From Zygnema circumcarinatum SAG 698-1b (lineage: Eukaryota; Plantae; Zygnematophyceae), in contig CM074804.1 in assembly GCA_037447605.1 (NCBI GenBank), positions 7,727,909-7,791,908 on the forward strand: a DNA stretch of 64,000 nt. The letters are read 5' to 3'. Numbering within the stretch: position 1 is the first letter of the stretch; every line of letters begins with the position of its first letter. Below are positions 7,639 through 60,300 of this stretch, piece after piece. A program made the translations under genes and the position numbers. Under the pieces are notes generated by a model. It saw nothing but the letters and a program-made list of their open reading frames with translations, made no database searches and was not told where the DNA came from.

Positions 7639-7956
7639 GGCCGCCCCTCTACGCCTTTTTATCCGTACGTGTCCGCTCCCGCGGCTCCTCAGCCCGACAC
7701 GTGTCCTCTAACTGCCGCCCGGCCGCGCCGCCGCGAAGCGGACAAAAGGCCCCGCTACTGATTTGCGGCTGCTCGCGGCGGGAGGCCGACTCTCCTCACT
7801 CCCTCTCCCTCCCCTTCCTCTCCATCTGTCCCCCCCTCCCCCTCTCTCACTCTCTTCGTCACCCTCCCTCAGTTCCTCCCTCTGTTCCTCCCTCCATCTC
7901 TCCCTCTTCTCTCCTTCTCCCTCGCCCTCCTTTCTCGCCCTCTCGCTCCCCCAGCC

Positions 7957-10473
7957 ATGGCGAACCTTCTCCGATGCTTCTTTTGCAGGAGCCGGAGGCC
8001 CCGTGGCGAGGGCGAATCTCACCTTGACACGTGTCAACCCACAACTGACGTGGAGGCCGAGGAGGCGGCCTTCCTCCCCGCGGCGGAGCCCCCGAGGAGG
8101 GTCCCTCTCGCGAGGACGCCACGTCAGCTGCTTGGCGGCCGCGGGGAGGGCTGCCACGTGGCAGCCTCTCGGTCGGTTGGAGCGCGCTGGAGTGGACACG
8201 TGGCGTGGGAGGCGGAGGGGGGCCACAGCTTCGACCCCAGCTCAGAGGAGAGCTTCCACCACTTGGGATTGGGCGCCTCTCAGACTCACTCGCAGAAGGG
8301 AGAGGGAGAGGGAGAGGGAGAGGGAGAGGCCTCCTCCCTGATGATGATGCGGAGGCAGAGGGGCGGAGCCATGGCGGCCATGTTCTCTCCCGCGAGGACG
8401 AAGAGTTCGGACGAGTTCGAATCCTGCGCGACCTCCTCACAGACGGCGACAGAGACGGAGGACAGCCTGGGGGAGAGCCATGGCGGCGACTTCGGGTACA
8501 CGTGGGAGCCCGATGAGGAGGGGGAGGCGGACACGTGGACCAATGCCGGCCCAAAGATGGCTCCCAATGTGGCCGAGGGAGGAGGCCCCGGGTGGGTCAA
8601 ATCGGCAGAAAAAGAGGCCCCTAAAGTCGCGACTTCGAACCCCATCAGCTCCGATCTCAAGCCCAAGAAACTCGCTGACGTCATCACCGGGTGCGGTCTC
8701 CGCGCGGTCGACTTCGGCCCCTCCGGCAGCCTTCGCTACCGCCTGCTGTTTGCTGACGTCAGCGGCGCCCCGAAGAGCCCCTGGCATGACGTCCCCCTCC
8801 ACGCCCCCTCGGGGGCCCTCCGCTTCCTCTGCAAGACGCCGGCTGCCACGTGGCAGCACCTCGAGGTGGCCACGGAGGAGCCCCTCGCGCCCCTCCGCCT
8901 CAAGCGGTCAAAAAGTCAACGTGGGGGCCCAACGCACTACGCTGAGAACGTGCCATGGAACTTTGGGTTTTTCCCGCAGACGGCGGCGCAGGGGGTGTTA
9001 GGGTTCAGGGGGGACGCGCTCCCGGTGGAGGCGGTGGAGATAGGGACACGTGTCGCACGTGTGGGGGAGGTGTACGGAGTGAAGGTGCTGGCGGCCATGG
9101 CGGTGGTGGAGGGAGGGGGCGGGGAAGCTTCCTGGAAGGTGGTGGTGATCGCGGAGGATGACGCCATGGCGCCCCTCCTGGGTGGTCTGCGTGACGTCTC
9201 TGTCTTCTTCCCGGACACGCTCGAGAGGCTCAGGGATTGGCTGCAGACGAGGAACTGCGTGCACCCAGGTGAGGGAGAGGGAGAGGGAGAGGGAGGGAGA
9301 GAGGGAGGGAGGGAGCAGCTGTGTGTGAGAGAGAGAGAGGGGGAGAGAGAGGGAGGGAAGTTATTTTGACGGTGTTGTTTGCGTGGCGAGGGTGGCCCTG
9401 CAGAGGACCGAGAGAGCGGCATCGGCTTCAACGGGCAGGCCAAGGACGAAGTGGTCGCCATGGAGGTGGTCCACGCGGCGCACGCCGCGTGGCGTCACGT
9501 GGCGGCAGATTACCGCAAGAGGACAAGTAGCAGCGCGCCGATCTCCATCAGCGAATACGAGAGCGACACGTGGCAGCAGCTCGCCGCCGCGGAGCCCAAC
9601 GAAGAAACGATCCCTCTGTGCGAGCTCGCAAAGATTTCCGCTTTTCGGTACGAGAGGGCGTGGCTGCGCTCAAGCAGGGACGACTCGGACTCCTCCCTCT
9701 CCCTCTCCCTCTCCTCCTCCTTCAACGCTTCGGGAAGCTCCTCTCCCGCCCTCTCCGAGGGAGCCATGGGCAGCCCCGCGAGGAGGATGCTTCAAAGCTT
9801 CCTCCACCGCAACCGAAAGAAGGGGACGGAGGGAGGGGAAGACGGAGAGGAGACTGCTCCTGCTCCCTCTCCCTCTCCCTCTCCTGCTCCTCCTAGGAAG
9901 GGCCTTAGGAGCGGAGAGATATGGAGAGGAGCTCCCATAGAACCCAAGAAGCAGAGTGGTGGTAGTCTCTCTCTCCCTTCCCCGAAGAGGTTCACTTTTG
10001 GGCACACGCGAAGCCTGGACGAGGAGACCATCAAGAAGATTCGGGTATGCAGGAGCCCTGCCTCGGCGGTGTTCGCGAGTGGGCGGACGTGGGGGGGGTC
10101 CAAGGGGACGTTTGAGAGGCAGCTCTCCTTCACAGAGGGGAAGGAGAGGGGGGGGAATGGCAGGAAGGCAGGGGGGGCAAAAGCTCCCTCTCAGATTGTG
10201 GCGGAGTGGCACGAGCTCTGTGCGACTGCGAAGAAGGAGGCGGAGGGAGAGGAGAAGGAGGGAGAGGGGGAGGGAGAGGGAGAAGGAGGAGGTGGGAGAG
10301 GAGGGGGAGCGAGAGGGAGGAAGTACTTTGAGCAAAAGCGGAATGTTTCGGAGGAGGAGAGGCGGATCACGGCGAGCCTTATAAAGTTGGCCTCGGAGAT
10401 GGCTAAAGGAGGGAAGCAGCAAATATCTGTGGAGGAGCTTCTGCGCCCTACGGCTTGTGTGGGAGGGGCGTGA
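7957..10473 (+). CDS. Family-I soluble inorganic pyrophosphatase-like protein, probably catalytically inactive, with long low-complexity N- and C-terminal extensions (2 exons)
   Basis: join(7957..9268, 9404..10473); the GT-AG intron keeps frame (g|ag = Glu). The core GSLRYRLLF..SPWHDVPL..LEVATEEPLAP..WNFGFFPQT..GDALPVEAVEIG..WKVVVIAEDD..FPDTLERLRDW..AHAAW matches the PPa6/IPP1-type fold motifs. Confidence 0.8.
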
Positions 10474-25713: not shown

Positions 25714-28700
25714 ATGGCAGCCATGGCCGCCCTCCTCCTCGCCGCCGTCTTGGCCGGCCACTGCGCGCCGACCCGCGCAGACCTGCCGGCCAGCAGCCTT
25801 TTTCCGCCGGCGTACGGACCGGCCGGCAGTGAGGTCAGTTCATGGAAACCGTTGTTGGGACAGTTTGCCGTTGCGTGTATGCATGGGTAGGACTGATCTA
25901 TGCGTCCAGATCCGTGGTCCACGACGCTGTGCACACGTGGAGATTTACGATTGGGTGTCTGCTTTGACTTTGTACGGCTTGACCGTACGGTCGTTCGTAC
26001 AGGTGGCGGATCCCTGCGAGGCACGCTTCGACGCGGCGTTCACGGCCGCGCTCTTCCCCGCCGGGTTCCAGTTCGGGACCGCCACGTCAGCAACGCAGGT
26101 GCGCGCCGGCGCCATGCAAAGCCATGCATCTTTTTTTTCTTACTTTTAGGAATCGGAACGGGAGGCGATTTTTGGCCATGTGAAATGGATGCTGGATTGC
26201 ATGGGGCTGCATGGGGTCGCAGGTGGAAGGTGCGGCTTTTGAGGGCGGGAGGGGCCCCTCCATTTGGGATGCGTTTGCAGCTACACCCGGTACGGTAATG
26301 TGCTGTGATTGCAGACCCTCCTGGACTCCTCTCTCTCTCTTTAAGGCCGATCAACTTTGCTTCAGGAAACGGATTGAATGTGACCACCATCGTGTTTGCG
26401 TTTCTATGTCTGAGTTCCGTCAACCATTGAGATAGTGGCACTGTCTGTCTGTGTAGCAATTTGCTGTGTTCGAGCTGACATGGAACCGTGCTGGGCTACG
26501 GAGAATGCATTCTGCAGGGAACATCGCCGATAACAGCACCTCGGACATTGCTGCCAACCAATACCACATGTTTCGTGTACGCATCTCTCGTTGACTATGC
26601 ATTGGAAACATGTATATACAGATATGCGAGAGAGTGTAGAGAGGGAGGGGGAGAGGGAGGAGGATGGGGAGAGCGAGCGAGAGAGGGTATGTCTTACGGG
26701 TTGGGTCATGTCACTAGTTTTGCTGGACTTGAAGGAGACCTCGGAGAGGCCCTCTGCAGGAGGATGTGAAATTGATGAAGGAGTTGGGAACCACAATGTA
26801 TCGCTTCTCCATTTCTTGGTCGCGAATACTTCCAAGTAACTCCAGAACCAAACCCCTTCAACCTCGAGAAAAGTTTGCAGTTTCAAACTGTTGAAACCCC
26901 CGAGAATTTCAGAACCCTAAATTCTTGAAATTGACGTTCGCAGAGGGAACCGGAGAAGTCAATCCGACAGGAATCGCATACTACAACGCGCTCATTGATG
27001 CCCTTCTTGCTGAAGGTATTCCTTTCATCCGTCCTCAAATTTCCACACCCATGTAACTCTCCTCGAATTTCCCCTCCTCTCCCTTTCTCGATTGCCCTTC
27101 TCCCATGTTGTAAATTGCTTGTTGACAACGAAAATGAGACCGGCAATCTTAAACGAAAATACATTACACTTTGAAACATGTATAGAGCTGAAAAATGTCC
27201 TGCTTTCCTTTTTTTAAATGCAGGCATCTCCCCTGCAGTCACTCTCTACCACTGGGACCTCCCACTGTATCTGGAGGAGACTATGGGCGCCTGGCTGAAT
27301 GCCTCCATAGTGTAAAGCTCCCACCCTCTCCAATATTGGGCTTCAAGATAGCCATTTCAGGGTTACAGAAGGGAATTTAGGGTTCCTCCTTAGGGTCATA
27401 AACGACCAAGCGGCTAGAAGGGTTTAGGGTTTCTAACATGACGTCAGCTGACATGTCCTGCAGTGACTACTTTATGGAATATGCGGATTTGTGTTTTCGC
27501 TCCTTTGGAGATCGAGTTCAGCTTTGGATGACGTTCAATGAGCCGGGAAATGTGGCTACTGAGGTAAATATTTTAGTATTGTTGTATTATCATTATTGTT
27601 ACTTTTTGTTTTGGTGAATTCCTCACATGTTTTACGAAGGCTGAAGGTGTTGCTCCGCCTGTAACAGGGGTACGCATCCGGCGAGATGCCCCCGCAACGC
27701 TGCTCAGATGCTGCCACGTGTCCTAACGGAGGGGACTCCTCATCTGAGCCGTACATTGTGGCGCACAACATTCTCCGCTCCCACGCATATGCAGTGGAGC
27801 TCTACCGCTCCAAGTATCAGGTGGGAGGGAGAAATTTGAAATAAGGAAAAGAAGAAATGGACGAGGAGGGGGAAGAAAGTGGGGGAGGGGGAGGGGGAGG
27901 GGGAATAGATGAAAGATAATTTTTTGATGACATGGATGAAATGGATAAGTTTAGAGAGGGCTTTACTTTAACGAACTCTATTCGATCTGAAAAATCGAAT
28001 CTGGAGAATGAAGTGAGAAATGGTGGAACTTTGTAGTAAGCAATTGCCTGGCAGGTTGGGAAGTGGTGGTCTTGTCGTGGTTTGGATGATTTGTATGAGT
28101 CCACTTACCCTCTCCCTACGCCATTTTTTTTTTTTTTTTTTTTCTTGGAGAAATTATGTCAATTCAGGCGCAGCAGGGAGGGCGCATAGGAATGGTTCTG
28201 CAGACATGGTTTTTGTATCCTCTCACAAACTCTACCGAAGATGAGGCCGCCAGCGAGAGGGGGATGCAGTTCAACTTTGGCTGGTAGGCTTCGAACAGAG
28301 AGGGAGAGGGAGAGGGGGAGGGGGGGGGAAGAGGGAAAGGGAGAGAATGGAGGAGAGGGAGAAGAAAAGGGTGTTAGAGGGAGAAAGGAGAGGGAGGGAG
28401 GAGGGAGGGAGGAGGGAGAGGAAAACGAGAGTGAGCGAGCGGGAGAGGGGGAGAGGGTGGCGGGGGAAGGGGTGGTGGGCAGTGGGTGTGGAAAGATTTC
28501 GGAGAGGGAGAGGAGGGGAAGGGGGATAATGTAAGTAAGCGAAGATGTATGACTCTCCAGAAATGCCCATAAAAAAATCTCAAGAAACTGCGAATCATCT
28601 CCTGAAAAAATCCGAAACCCTTACTCCTCAGACCGAGTTTAGAAGCACCTTACATCCTCCAAAAGGAAAATCTTTTAAAACGAAAAAAATTGACCCTGCG

Positions 28701-30333
28701 CTGTGCAGGTTTGCGGAACCCCTCGTGGTCGGAGACTATCCAGCTGTCATGCGCCAATTGGTCGGCGCGAGGTTGCCGGAATTCAGTCCTTTGGAACAAA
28801 TGTTACTGAAAAATTCAACGGACTTTTTTGGACTCAATTTTTATACCGCTCGTTATGCGTCGGCGGCACTTCCACCGGCGCCTGAAAATGCGTCCATACT
28901 GACAGACCCGCAGATTAACCTCTCAGGTAGGAAATGGAGAGAGTGAGAGAGAGAGAGCGGGAGAGAGGGTGAGAGGGAGAGAGGGAGAAGGGGAGAGGGG
29001 GAGAGGGGGAGAGCGGGAGAGCGGGAGAGAGACAGAGAGCGGGAGCGAGTGGGAGGGGGGAGAGAGAGGGCGAGATAGAGAGAATGTGTGAGAGAGTGAG
29101 AGACCTAGTCTCCGTCAAGCAAAAAGATAGAGGGGAAGGACGTTAATGGCGCAAATTTGGAAGAAGAAATGCCTGACACCGCAACAAGATCCGTGAAACT
29201 CGAAATATTTCCATGTTCATAAGAAGAGTGTGCTGTTTGATGCAGAAACAAACGCTCTTGGAGTGTTGATTGGCACGCCGGTGAGTCGCTCAAGTTTTAC
29301 AGATACAACTTTAACTCATAGAGTTTTTAGGGTTTTTAGGGAGACAGAGAGAGGGAGCGGGTGGGGGCGAGGGTAAAGTGTGGTGGAAACGAAAGAGGTT
29401 TGAGAGATTCCTGGAGTTTCTTCTGATATCAATGGGACAGAAATTCTATGTGTCTACTGTTGTATGTTTGTTATAATGCTTGTTTTTTCCCCCCTTACCT
29501 TTGCTGCAGAGTGCATCTGAATGGCTCCTCTCGGTTCCTAACGGAATATATTCCATGATTATGTGGGTTAGTGCCCGCTATAGCAACATTCCTATCTTGA
29601 TAACGGAAAATGGTGAGGCTTCTTCAATCCTAAAGAATCCTAACTGGTATATCAGAGTTGCTGTAACTACATTGCGTAAAAAAAAACAATATATCTTGAA
29701 ATTCCTGAGATGTCTGTATACAAGTGTTCATCTCGCAGGAGTGAGCGATTCCGGGAATGTATCGATTCCTACCGCCTTATGCGATCAAGAGCGCATCACA
29801 TACATGGAGTCTTATTTAAAGGAAATTCTCCAGGCCATAAAGTAAGAGATCCTTTGCAAACATATTTCCGTTCTTTGCGTGTGAAAGCATTCTTTTACAC
29901 TCATCCATGTATCCATCGTACAGTTTTCTTTTTCAGGTTGAGATGAATGGGAGAGAGGAAGAGAGACAGAGAGAGCGAGAGAGAGTGGGAGAGTAAATTT
30001 TAGAGAAATAACCTTGAAATAGCCTATCCTTCCTAAAAATGTATGTGGGTCTCTACCAAAGTTGTAGATTCACACACATGTGTACGTACATGCATGCATG
30101 CGTGCATGCATGCATGCTCGCCGGCGCTGACTGCGGGCCGGTGCCGTTTGGCGCGCAGCGAGGGCGCGCTTGTGGAGGCGTACCTGGCGTGGGCGTTCGT
30201 GGACAATTGGGAGTGGGCGGAGGGCTTCTCGCAGCGCTTCGGCCTCCTCTTCGTCGACTTCGCCCGCGAGGACCGACCGCGCCGCGCGAAAATGTCCGCA
30301 ATATGGTACGCGCGCTTCCTGCGCGCGCCCTAG
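25714..30333 (+). CDS. Glycoside hydrolase family 1 beta-glucosidase with signal peptide (~15 exons)
   Basis: [18 protein letters not shown] leader; [15 protein letters not shown]|[16 protein letters not shown]; [12 protein letters not shown]; TLYHWDLP; acid/base motif TFNEP (~27530); DFFGLNFYT; nucleophile motif ITENG (~29600); [23 protein letters not shown]. Confidence 0.93.
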
Positions 30334-38637: not shown

Positions 38638-39840
38638 TCAGGAATCGCCTGCTTCATAGACATTCAGTGTCGCCAGAGGAGCAATCTTTTCCAAAGCCAT
38701 TCGTACTGTGCTGCCAAATTGAACAGCTCCGTCGCTTTTCTCTACAAGGACAACTTCAGTGATGTCACTATAAACCTCCCCACCTTGGGCGATCATGGCA
38801 ATGATGGCAGCCTGTAGAGGAGGCAAACTAGGGTTGTATGCAGCACATTCCATGTACGAGCCACGATAAATTATTCCACCAGAAGTCCTTATGGCAACTC
38901 CAGACGGAGAATTGCTGTATGGAGCATAGGAGTCGTTTGCTGCTTCCAAGGCTGCTGCCAAAAGTACGTTTTGATCATCAACTTTTATGATAACTTGCCT
39001 TCCAGAAGAAGCAGCAGCGCCATTTCCATGAGCTTGCAAGAGCTTCAGGCCGTTGTCCCTAGCCTCCATGAGCAGCGGAAAATCTTTATGCAGCAAATCG
39101 TGTGGGCCAAAACGGTGGGGAAGAAATGCGGAGAGCTGCCGCTCGTCGCCATCACCACTGATGCAGATGCGGAGGTCTCCTGCGTTACGAAGCTCCGACA
39201 GAAACTGGCGGCAATGGCCACATGGCGCATGGCTGACACAAACATATTGAAGAGAGGTTTCGCCATGCTGAGATGCATTTGCAACCATAAACTGCTCAGC
39301 GTGGACTGAATGATGGAGTGGAAGTCCCGGAAACTCTAGGTTAACGCCTACATATGCGTGCCCGCTGCCGCCAATGCCTAAGGCTGCCACGTGAAAAGCA
39401 GAGATAGGAGGTCGAGCAAGAGGCATTGAGGATTGCACAATGCGAATCATGGCCTCCTTTTGGGAACCGTCGCTGTGCTCGACCTGCACCCTCTCAAGAT
39501 CTTCCGGCTGGAAAAGGAAGGGAGTTTTTCTACTCTTGTCGATCCAAACTTGAGTCCGTTTTCCTGCTGCAAAAGTCTGTGATGGCCCTTGTGTTCCATT
39601 TACTATTGTTTCTGCCAGGAGTAAACGCCGAGCTCTGTGAGTCCATGGCCGCCTGTGACCAAGTACAGCTGTATTGCTTTCAGAAAGGTATCCCGGGGGC
39701 GTTTCCAATTGCCTGCAGAAGCGTGATTTAAGCTGAGAAATGTGAGATGCTACTGAGAAGCGCGCGTTCCTCCAATCTGTGCACTGTCTACATATTGCCT
39801 GCAAACTGTGTCCTGCGTGTGTTGGCGCCATTCCAGCCAT
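38638..39840 (-). CDS. CDA: Cytidine deaminase, plant/E. coli two-domain type, single ORF with ~100 aa N-terminal extension
   Basis: PPISAFHVAALG..GVNLEFPGLPLHHSVHAEQF..HAPCGHCRQFLSEL (Zn-binding HAE and PCxxC motifs); second domain SYAPYSNSPSGVAI..GSYMECAAYNPSLPPLQAA. Confidence 0.92.
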   Translation of the reverse strand: MAGMAPTHAGHSLQAICRQCTDWRNARFSVASHISQLKSRFCRQLETPPGYLSESNTAVLGHRRPWTHRARRLLLAETIVNGTQGPSQTFAAGKRTQVWIDKSRKTPFLFQPEDLERVQVEHSDGSQKEAMIRIVQSSMPLARPPISAFHVAALGIGGSGHAYVGVNLEFPGLPLHHSVHAEQFMVANASQHGETSLQYVCVSHAPCGHCRQFLSELRNAGDLRICISGDGDERQLSAFLPHRFGPHDLLHKDFPLLMEARDNGLKLLQAHGNGAAASSGRQVIIKVDDQNVLLAAALEAANDSYAPYSNSPSGVAIRTSGGIIYRGSYMECAAYNPSLPPLQAAIIAMIAQGGEVYSDITEVVLVEKSDGAVQFGSTVRMALEKIAPLATLNVYEAGDS

Positions 39841-57311: not shown

Positions 57312-60300
57312 CTATCGCTTCCGAGGAGGATCACGACCTTTCCTGAAGCCAAGAGCTCCCTCCAAACGTAGATATTCGCTTGTGATTCCAGCCAGCTCCA
57401 ATATTTCAACATCTACGCCCAACACTGATTCCTTTACACCGCCCTTCCCCTCCTCGTTTCTTCTCGAAACCCGTCCTCTCCCACTCCTCTCTCCTGCATA
57501 TTTGACAGATAGGTCATCCGTCTCTGTGTCATGTGAAATCTTTGCCACTCTCTGGACAGGCTTCCAGTCCCCTCCAAGCCAACCTGCTGAGCGTGACTCT
57601 GCCCTCTGCACAGGGCGTTTCATTGTAGATTCGTTCAGCGGAGCATACTTCTCGGCTCCCTTTACCTCCTCGAAGTGGCTCGAAGATTCCGTGCTTCTTT
57701 CCTCAGTTTCAAGACGTCTTTGCATGTTGGCATGAATCAAGTTCGCCTCGACCTCCTTGCTCCTTTTCCACGTGTCAATTAGGTAGTCATTGCTAATTCT
57801 TGTCTTGTCGAAGGACTCCTGAGGCATAACCTTTGCAGATACCATCTGTCCTTCTCGCTTAGTATCTTCTGACAGTTCTCCTCCTTGCCTATGTTCTCCT
57901 TCACTGGCAGTTTCCCAAACAGAGAACGGCCGTCGTAAGTCTAGCCCAGGTTCGGATGCTTTAGGATTGTCTTCACCATCAGGTTGCCTTTCACAAACAC
58001 TCTCCATAGAAGGACGCATCGTGTCGGCCCTGTATTCTTGCCGCCATACCTCTCCTCCATCCCCAACCAATGTAATCCTTCCTTCGTTGTGTTCTCCTTC
58101 ACCTTCTGCTTCCTGAACTGAGGCTTGATTCTGTGAGGCTAAGCGGCTAGTTGCTGAATCAGACGCCAAATGTCTCCAAAGCGTTCTCCTTCCGTGATCA
58201 TTCCCATCCGAACCTACACTTACTTCATTTTCAGACTGCCCTTGCTCGAGCAAGCCGTCCATGGAATGCGGTTCCCCTTCAAGACTGCCCTGCATTCCTT
58301 CCTTCTCTTTCTCCCATCTGTCTCTCTGCATCCCTTTTCTCTTTTTCTGTCGATGAATCACCTCTGCTCCGTTCACCACCTTCACTACTCCTTTCAAACC
58401 CCACACCTTTCCCCGCTTCACATCACTCAACCATTTCAGCAAACTCTGCTGAGGCTTCAAGTCTTCACGCTCCATCTCCACTACAAGTTTTTCTGCCTCC
58501 CTAAACCTTCCTGCCAAAAGATAACCTGCAATCCTTGCTGAATAACTCGTTTCGCTCGGCCTGAACCCTGCTGCCTTCATCCGGTTGAACCACACCTCTG
58601 CCTTTTTGTAGAATCCTGCCTTGCTGTATGCCCCAATTAGAGAATGGAATGTAAACTCATTGGGCTGTACACCTGCAGCTACCATACACTCCAACCATAC
58701 GAGGGCCCTTTTGAAGTTTCTCGCCCGAGCGAAGGCAGAGACGACGCAGCTGTAGCTCACTTCATTTGCAACATTTCCTTTCGCTCGCATCTCCCTGAAT
58801 GCATACTCAAAGCAGAGAGTAAGGTTCCGCAAAAGAAACGAATGAGATGAATTTAGAGCTCAAGTATGCATCGCTATGTCTTTAAACAAAGCACAGAAAA
58901 GCAGAGTGGAAGTAAGGGATCAAGAAGCACCTGAATAAGGCCTCCATCTTGTCCAGCTCATTTGCTTTCCCATATGCGTGCAGCAGAGTATTGTAAGATA
59001 CTCTGTCAGGCCTGCAGACAAACCCAACAGATACACGAGAGTTGGTAACAAAAGCAAAATATGCTTCGTCGATCATTTGCACTCAAAGCTTTTTGTCAGA
59101 TTCTCTATTTCTTAATTTCACACATTTGAAAACACATTCACACAGTAATACACCACCGGCATTAAAAATTCATCAATAAGAATGAGTGATCAAAATGCAT
59201 CTGCACTTTTCGTTCTCCTGTGAGCAGACATTCCTTCGTCTCCCTATAATCTCCTTTCATCTACTTCTGCAGTTTCTTTCATTTCTCCTCTCCGGCAGCA
59301 AACAGGCGAGCTTTTGATTTAGACCTTCGTCTGCTTTCTGGTAAAAAATCCAATGGCAGTACAGATGGAGACTCGAGCAACGGGTGCGAACCTGATTCTT
59401 TGGCCCTTTTCTTTCATTTTCGCAAATAGCTCCTCGGCCTCCGTCAACATACGACATCGTGAATATGTCGCCAACATCACATTGTACACCCTTAACGGGT
59501 CCTCCAATTTCTCCTCCCAGCCTCCTTCCACCATTCGCTTCATCACTGCTATGGCCCCATGCATTTGCTGGCACTTCTCATACGCGTGGACCATGGCCAT
59601 CCATGTCAATTCATTCGGCACCAACCCAGCCCCCAGCATTCTCGTCCACAGTGCTTTCATCTTTGAGAGAATCCCTCTCTCTCCATATGCTCGAATTAGA
59701 ATGTTATATGTCCATGTACAAACAGGCAACTGTTTCATCTCTATCCAATCCAGCACCCGTTCTGCTGCCCCAACTTCTCCCGACTTCATGTATCCTACGA
59801 TCAAGGCATGGTATGCCTCCACAGGATACACGCCGGCCGCTTCCATATCCCGAATGACTTCTTCCGCCCTTGCCACTCTTCCGAGCTTTACCCACATGTC
59901 AACCAGAATGGTGAAACTGTAGTCATTTGGTTCTATCTGTCTCCTCTTCATCTCCACAAACACTTTCTGAGCCATATCAGGTAAGCCAGCTTTTGCATAG
60001 CTGTCCATTAGGTCTGTAAAGGTCCGATTTGATGGGGGACAGGAGGCAGGCATCTGTGAGATGACCGCCTCTGCTTTGGCAAACTCACCATTCCGAGCAT
60101 AACATGAAATCAAACAATTATAAGATGCCACAGAAGGCTTCAGCCCCCTTCGAAGCATAGCTGCATGGAATTCCTCCACCTGTCGACGGTCAGATGAAAG
60201 CGGAAAACAAAACGACGAAGTGATTAGTAAGAGGCCTTTTCGATAAGACTGATAGTAACTGCTTTATGCAATGCTGGTAACATGCGGAAGATACAAGACC

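Follow-up and report, generated by a model that had tools for sequence, protein, structure and literature searches.

Soluble pyrophosphatase (PPase) is an essential and very conserved housekeeping enzyme, and its eukaryotic-type family I representatives, solved from yeast (1e6a, 1wgi), human (6c45) and Toxoplasma (5wrt) and including the PPa6 type of plant and algal plastids, are the closest described counterparts of a gene analysed here in Zygnema circumcarinatum SAG 698-1b, a conjugating green alga from the sister group of land plants. The gene has two exons, lies at positions 7957-10473 of the + strand of a 64,000-nucleotide stretch (hereafter the window, whose own numbering is used throughout; contig CM074804.1 of assembly GCA_037447605.1, positions 7,727,909 to 7,791,908) and encodes a product of 793 amino acids (aa; 437 + 1 + 355 codons). 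It shares with these enzymes the same fold (template modelling (TM) score 0.78-0.82, root-mean-square deviation (rmsd) 1.6-2.4 Å, 29-33% identity), the SPWH, WNxGxxPQT and SWK motifs and the C-terminal helix. Unlike them, it has 10 of 13 catalytic residues replaced, a 252-aa N-terminal arm, a tail of about 320 aa and a clade-specific motif after the domain, and it belongs to a separate clade with 100% support.

VSP1, the acidocalcisomal/vacuolar PPase of trypanosomatids (5cuy, 5cuu, 5c5v), likewise carries its PPase domain inside a longer protein and matches the query at E ~1e-23, but it retains GDNDPVD and DWK, catalytic positions that the Zygnema protein is without. VSP1 is catalytically active, and what it has beyond the PPase domain is a folded EF-hand domain at the N-terminus, not disordered arms. 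Outside the PPases, the Arabidopsis pseudo-β-amylase BAM9 (PMC12046210) is a pseudoenzyme derived from a metabolic enzyme. BAM9 and pseudoenzymes generally (PMC5106787, PMC10211241) resemble the query in that the fold is kept, catalytic residues are lost and the gene is under selection, with a presumed regulatory or scaffolding role of the kind proposed below, although the fold differs.

The middle of the protein is, by homology and structural modelling, a family I soluble PPase fold. Its exon 1 part scored 45.3 bits with PF00719, whose cut-off is 23.5 bits (E 1.1e-11; 28-124 of the 153 profile positions aligned). A phmmer search of the PDB with the 206-aa stretch 8650-9267, of which residues 22-199 were matched, returned eukaryotic-type PPase chains only, the best being the Toxoplasma PPase 5wrt_A (E 7.2e-24), with trypanosome VSP1, human and yeast PPases matching at E 1e-19 to 1e-23. 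After iterated search, the helix at the beginning of exon 2 aligned with the same helix in dozens of true PPases; since the start of exon 2 corresponds to the last helix of the yeast enzyme, the domain spans the intron and extends roughly from aa 253 to 470. The AlphaFold2 (AF2) model of the domain, built with a 97-row alignment, reached a predicted local distance difference test (pLDDT) value of 92.3 and a predicted TM score of 0.88, a single-sequence model reaching pLDDT 46 only. All top 50 Foldseek matches of the model were family I PPases (best TM 0.81-0.82), human PPA1 (6c45_A) superposing with TM 0.81 and rmsd 1.6 Å, and the near-invariant core residues of the PPase fold are all present in the query. 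The NCBIfam search of the exons of the window gave no match. An initial annotation, made from the sequence without database searches, had described a PPase fold with a dismantled active site; the profile match, the model and the survival of only three catalytic residues bear this out, and the fold motifs that it listed are all present at mapped coordinates (Table 1).

The catalytic columns were taken as yeast E48, K56, E58, R78, Y93, D115, D117, D120, D147, D152, K154, Y192 and K193, where the residues of 48 true PPases are E K E R Y D D D D D K Y K, each present in 44 to 48 of the 48 rows. The corresponding string of the query is K H E T F D L E E S K R N, with E58, D115 and K154 kept (3/13) and the changes E48K, K56H, R78T, Y93F, D117L, D120E, D147E, D152S, Y192R and K193N (10/13). 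Y93F, D120E and D147E are conservative; through the others the site loses its general base (D117L), one metal ligand (D152S), an acidic residue (E48K), the whole P1 phosphate triad (R78T, Y192R and K193N) and a further lysine (K56H). The metal-binding signature DxDPxD, present in 47 to 48 of the 48 true rows, has become D-A-L-P-V-E (9013-9030). Every replacement that the initial annotation had listed agreed with the 48 true PPases, and only D147E had been missed. Catalytic Asp, Lys or Arg retained at shifted positions, an escape that it had also considered for Asp and Lys, were not seen: inspection of the R78 loop and of the Y192/K193 turn revealed no replacement acid or base. Single changes at these positions of the yeast enzyme lower kcat by one to three orders of magnitude, and the lost positions coincide with the active-site variants named in the PDB titles of solved yeast PPase structures. 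As the replacements affect the general base, the acidic cluster that binds Mg and the basic and aromatic residues that bind phosphate, we strongly infer that the protein should not hydrolyse pyrophosphate (PPi).

HMMER, run exhaustively over 1.84 billion representatives, returned 1269 hits, and the family statistics were drawn from the best 150 of these. Eighty-six of these 150 keep at most 6 of 11 catalytic residues and 61 keep at least 9, with three in between, and the degenerate members have a median length of 610 aa as against 313 aa for the true enzymes. In a maximum likelihood tree of 97 domains, 47 degenerate rows fell on one side of a branch supported at 100% by the Shimodaira-Hasegawa-like approximate likelihood ratio test (SH-aLRT), the query being sister to the relative P0002 with 98% support. 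On this tree these degenerate PPases have a single origin and form one large clade. No description of a soluble PPase pseudoenzyme family, in Zygnematophyceae or elsewhere, was found in the full-text literature; the initial annotation, which knew of no such family, was therefore right for the literature searched, but the gene is not unique and belongs to a large clade. Thirty proteins were looked up for taxonomic range, and the eight named clade members among them were all from Zygnematophyceae, namely Mesotaenium endlicherianum (five, including ME000420S07042, P0004, and ME000124S00201, P0016), Closterium (two, including CAI5973334.1, P0145) and Netrium digitus (one, EP00270_P005535, P0103), 10 others being EukProt transcripts; land-plant members may occur further down the hit list. 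Two word-indexed protein searches added nothing on distribution: the one with the domain gave no match, low-complexity words swamping the candidates, and the one with a 22-row full-length family alignment, likewise uninformative in this respect, returned two known relatives only.

The replacements recur across the clade. Lys or Thr stands at E48, Glu at D120 (33/48), Ser at D152 (28/48), R78 is lost and K154 is kept, and the query follows this pattern with K at E48, E at D120, S at D152, T at R78 and K154. A His follows the R78 column in 65% of the clade, a Cys lies at or near Y192 (25/48; 60%), and a CxC replaces Y192-K193 (WL[RK]TC.C). The query, with WLQTRNC, keeps the second Cys and has Arg in place of the first, as do P0002, P0033 and P0018. 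Among the columns that are conserved in true PPases but not in the clade is every catalytic one; the reverse set, conserved in the clade alone, is small and scattered, in agreement with a structural module. At the column of Trp52, a residue of the yeast dimer interface, 83% of the clade has Gly and the query has Ala. After the domain, clade members share a module of the form YE..W ... PL ... S...[YF]ERAW followed by acidic residues, which the query also has (9553-9690). The module could be aligned with P0004 and P0050 of Mesotaenium as well as with P0002, P0015, P0017, P0094, P0124 and P0027, and was absent from the true PPases P0029, P0141 and P0032. The query has the degenerate site, post-domain module and long tail of the other members, and differs from them in that its domain follows a 252-aa arm instead of lying near the N-terminus, in the Arg at the first Cys of CxC and in the Leu at D117.

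Other architectures and losses were observed among the hits. P0136 (317 aa, from a JGI metagenome) is a partly degenerate PPase with 6/11 catalytic residues and is nested among true enzymes, and so represents an independent second loss of catalytic residues. P0001 (5113 aa, NCBI, on a contig of 18.7 kb) contains 17 matched stretches in what is a tandem array of degenerate PPase folds, with a site pattern (K K E.. D R E. S K) resembling that of the pseudo-PPase clade. P0007, P0010, P0035, P0037 and P0062 (532-1320 aa) have two to four tandem PPase domains with catalytic residues intact or nearly so.

The search for an orthologue that the initial annotation had suggested returned P0002 (644 aa), which aligns to window positions 8713 to 10443 over 590 columns (E 1e-73), from the domain through the C-terminal tail. 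Its identical coding sequence (CDS) was assembled in seven runs (SRR8128902-08) as intron-less contigs of 2.2-2.9 kb with short flanks, which look like mRNA; no poly(A) tail was seen on them. Between the window and P0002 the proportion of synonymous differences (pS) was 0.91 in the domain and 0.87 in exon 2, that is, synonymous sites are saturated, and the contrast with the proportion of nonsynonymous differences (pN; 0.35 and 0.45, respectively) was consequently used in place of dN/dS. Residue identity was 49% in the domain and 38% in exon 2 and the tail, and in the pocket it was 7/13, not above the domain average.

The gene model is supported by several features of the sequence. The open reading frames (ORFs) 7957..9369 and 9379..10473 occupy one common frame, and the in-frame intron predicted between the exons contains an in-frame TGA at 9367-9369; its excision creates a single Glu codon from the G at 9268 and the AG at 9404-9405. 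The alignment with P0002 shows this intron as a gap of exactly 45 residues, and once it is removed the junction is ungapped over 20 residues. The 793 aa and the 135-nt GT..AG intron agree with the roughly 790 aa and in-frame intron of the initial annotation. The start ATG at 7957 has a GCCATGG context, with the nearest upstream in-frame stop at 7759 and G+C at third codon positions (GC3) rising from 0.62 to 0.76 past the ATG; the CT-rich leader upstream of it is probably a 5' untranslated region or core promoter. As the region has a G+C content of 62-68% and long chance ORFs also occur in other frames and on the opposite strand, an open frame alone is weaker evidence than had first been assumed. 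A Pfam search of the off-frame and antisense ORFs of the gene region gave no match. Under a first-order Markov model of matched composition, the N-terminal arm, the domain and the tail had probabilities of 0.017, 0.03 and 0.0004, respectively, of containing no in-frame stop (product ~2e-7), and the in-frame GC3 of 0.71-0.83 compares with 0.44-0.59 at second positions.

By composition, a charge-hydropathy analysis placed both arms on the disordered side and the domain on the folded side. The N-terminal arm showed no similarity to any of the 150 relatives, and its length is unusual, the domain starting at a median of about residue 32 in 50 long relatives; a GEGEGE run in it is encoded by (GAGGGA)n at 8297-8329. 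The C-terminal tail matched, among the relatives searched, only P0002, exon 2 aligning with its residues 290-600 (E 1.3e-31). Besides the post-domain module, the tail holds four islands conserved with P0002 (Table 1), one of which, RSLDEETIKK, is a candidate phospho-site. They are separated by Ser/Gly/Pro/Glu runs encoded by CT- and GA-rich microsatellites, and a feature search of the tail gave no usable match. The two disordered extensions of the initial annotation were thus recovered, with the tail at about the 320 aa given, whereas the N-terminal arm measures 252 aa instead of about 240 and the tail, with its conserved islands, is not featureless.

Purine-rich (GAGGGA)n/(GA)n microsatellites lie at 8297-8329 in exon 1, at 9271-9355 in the intron, at 10236-10319 in exon 2 and at 10478-10498 past the stop, and CT-rich arrays at 7790-7936 in the leader and at 9690-9720 and 9854-9891 in exon 2. 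Since these microsatellites encode GEGEGE, SLSLSL and SPSPSP runs, repeat slippage accounts for some of the low complexity in the arms.

Taken together with the anatomy of the protein, these results make it probable, in our judgement, that the gene encodes a non-catalytic PPase descendant whose fold is under purifying selection and serves as the head of a disordered scaffold or adaptor, and the repurposed scaffold put forward by the initial annotation remains the best reading. The folded head would be reused as a stable, metal-independent structural or interaction module, followed by the clade-specific post-domain motif and flanked by the disordered arms, and the conserved short linear motifs of the tail, comprising the basic-hydrophobic patch, the SLDE site and a pair of helix-like islands, would be points of partner recruitment or regulation. 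Four points weigh against this proposal. The argument for a scaffold role is drawn entirely from anatomy. The acidic pocket residues E58, D115, E120 and E147 remain and could still hold one metal ion. Further in-frame introns may be hidden in the GA-rich stretches, and the true start may be further downstream than 7957, since the N-terminal arm is without a conserved counterpart; ATGs at 8341-8347 are a candidate alternative.

A different use of the remodelled pocket, as a ligand, metal or redox sensor signalling to the tails, either for PPi or phosphate or through a His plus CxC zinc or redox switch, appears unlikely. K154, E58 and D115 are kept, new basic residues have appeared (K at E48, R at Y192), and the recurrence throughout the clade of S at D152, E at D120, His after R78 and Cys near Y192 would be compatible with a new function of the site. 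Yet R78, Y192, K193 and K56 are all replaced and four of the six acidic metal ligands as well as D117 are changed; since the phosphate-binding residues are the most thoroughly removed, the PPi/phosphate-ligand sensor that the initial annotation had offered beside the scaffold is not supported. The switch version lacks the first Cys of CxC in both the query and P0002, the pocket is no better conserved between these two (7/13) than the domain as a whole (49%), and no uniform new pocket is seen across the clade.

A second alternative, in which the dead head pairs with a true soluble PPase and tunes or localises it as trypanosome prozymes do, seems to us improbable. The plastid eukaryotic-type soluble PPases of algae and plants are known as monomers, and the Gly (83% of the clade) or Ala (query) at the yeast interface Trp52 column does not favour such pairing; nor would many paralogues with differing tails be necessary for regulating one enzyme. 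The fold is, on the other hand, very precisely kept, and many pseudoenzymes regulate active paralogues (PMC5106787, PMC10211241). Still more doubtful is a residual or altered hydrolase, weakly cleaving PPi or another phospho-substrate by means of the remaining acids: E58, D115, E120, E147 and K154 are available to it, and D120E, D147E and Y93F are conservative, but D117 is Leu, D152 is Ser, R78, K56 and K193 have become uncharged or weakly basic, and ten positions are changed in all. That the locus is a mis-modelled gene, or a pseudogene that is decaying or silent, for which the chance ORFs left by GC- and GA-rich sequence and the microsatellites inside the coding region might speak, is very unlikely and the least probable of all, because the frame is open against a chance of ~2e-7, no core residue is lost, the tail shows conservation with P0002 although synonymous sites are saturated and the antisense and off-frame ORFs had no Pfam match, in keeping with the rejection of a dead pseudogene by the initial annotation.

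Here a large expansion came after a single loss of catalysis, with 86 degenerate members in the best 150 representatives and several copies per genome, and the family suits the question of how a metal-dependent fold is reused once its metal site has been removed. As all the named members come from the algae closest to land plants, it is a candidate lineage-specific regulatory invention around plant terrestrialisation. To this family the present locus contributes a member with an N-terminal arm, six tail islands defined by P0002 as a probably expressed orthologue, the clade-specific post-domain motif and a possible conserved neighbourhood. A more specific scenario is rather unlikely and is offered as speculation, namely that a new signalling or scaffold family arose from a housekeeping PPase as the conjugating algae radiated or shortly before, that the P1 pocket became a His plus CxC redox or metal switch, that the head is linked through the new post-domain motif to disordered tails that evolve fast, and that the query would be an old, positionally conserved member (the neighbourhood of Mesotaenium ME000420S07042) of a sub-lineage in which half of the switch was lost.

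Table 1 Features of the pseudo-PPase gene and other genes or exons placed in the window.
Feature	Position	Strand	Basis
CT-rich (pyrimidine-rich) leader	7780..7956	+	CT-rich tandem arrays 7790-7936
Exon 1 CDS, 437 codons + base 1 of codon 438	7957..9268	+	open frame; GT donor 9269-9270
N-terminal arm, 252 aa, acidic (isoelectric point 5.1), disordered composition	7957..8712	+	GC3 0.76-0.80; composition
PPase-fold domain, exon 1 part, aa 253-437	8713..9268	+	PF00719, PDB matches, AF2 model, Foldseek
SPWHDVPL	8776-8799	+	fold motif in sequence
CKTP	8830-8841	+	motif in sequence
QHLEV	8854-8868	+	motif in sequence
GGPTHYA	8923-8943	+	motif in sequence
WNFGFFPQT	8956-8982	+	motif in sequence
GDALPVE	9010-9030	+	motif in sequence
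VVEGGGGEASWK	9103-9138	+	motif in sequence
FPDTLERLRDWLQTRNCVHP	9208-9267	+	motif in sequence
Intron, 135 nt, in frame, mostly (GAGGGA)n	9269..9403	+	GT..AG (AG at 9402-9403); tandem repeat 9271-9355
Exon 2 CDS, 356 codons including the split one	9404..10473	+	open frame; TGA stop 10471-10473; homology to P0002
Last helix of PPase domain, GIGFNGQAKDEVVAMEVVHAAHAAW	9404..9513	+	matches yeast PPase 200-234
Post-domain module EYESDTW ... IPLCE ... SAFRYERAW, then acidic run	9553..9690	+	alignment with clade members
Tail island, basic-hydrophobic, ARRMLQSFLHRNRKK	9778..9822	+	P0002 counterpart RKRMWLSFLKRQKHK
Tail island RSLDEETIKK	10009..10038	+	P0002 counterpart HSLDEATMRK
Tail island PSQIVAEWHELCATAKK	10186..10236	+	P0002 counterpart PSQLMAEWEELCALGKK
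C-terminal island EEERRITASLIKLASEMAKGGKQQISVEELL	10351..10443	+	P0002 counterpart DEDESRTMASLLRLTSHLAKVRNQQISAEELL
UAA-family nucleotide-sugar transporter exon/gene	19769-20269	-	
Family 1 glycoside hydrolase (GH1) exon/gene	28545-28946	+	
Pentatricopeptide repeat (PPR) protein exon/gene	57312-58832	-	

In addition to the genes listed in Table 1, the window contains a cytidine deaminase gene of the dimeric type (38638-39840, - strand) 28 kb from the pseudo-PPase gene, with 63% identity to one contig and 52-54% to Sphagnum, Selaginella, Mesotaenium and Spirogloea alike. Together with the PPR gene it places the window in the plant lineage and speaks against an apicomplexan origin, which the best PDB match might have suggested. 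In Mesotaenium, the deaminase ME000420S07050 (P0161) and the pseudo-PPase ME000420S07042 (P0004), which falls in the subgroup of the query, are on one scaffold, eight gene numbers apart, and, since the same two genes sit 28 kb apart in the window, this suggests, as a lead only, a conserved neighbourhood and positional orthology with Mesotaenium. Between the pseudo-PPase gene and the transporter, positions 16000-18800 are strongly strand-skewed (GC skew -0.39, AT skew -0.49), and both strands carry ORFs of 300-578 aa in several frames; a Pfam search of one of these ORFs gave no match, and the segment is probably a long low-complexity or repeat tract.

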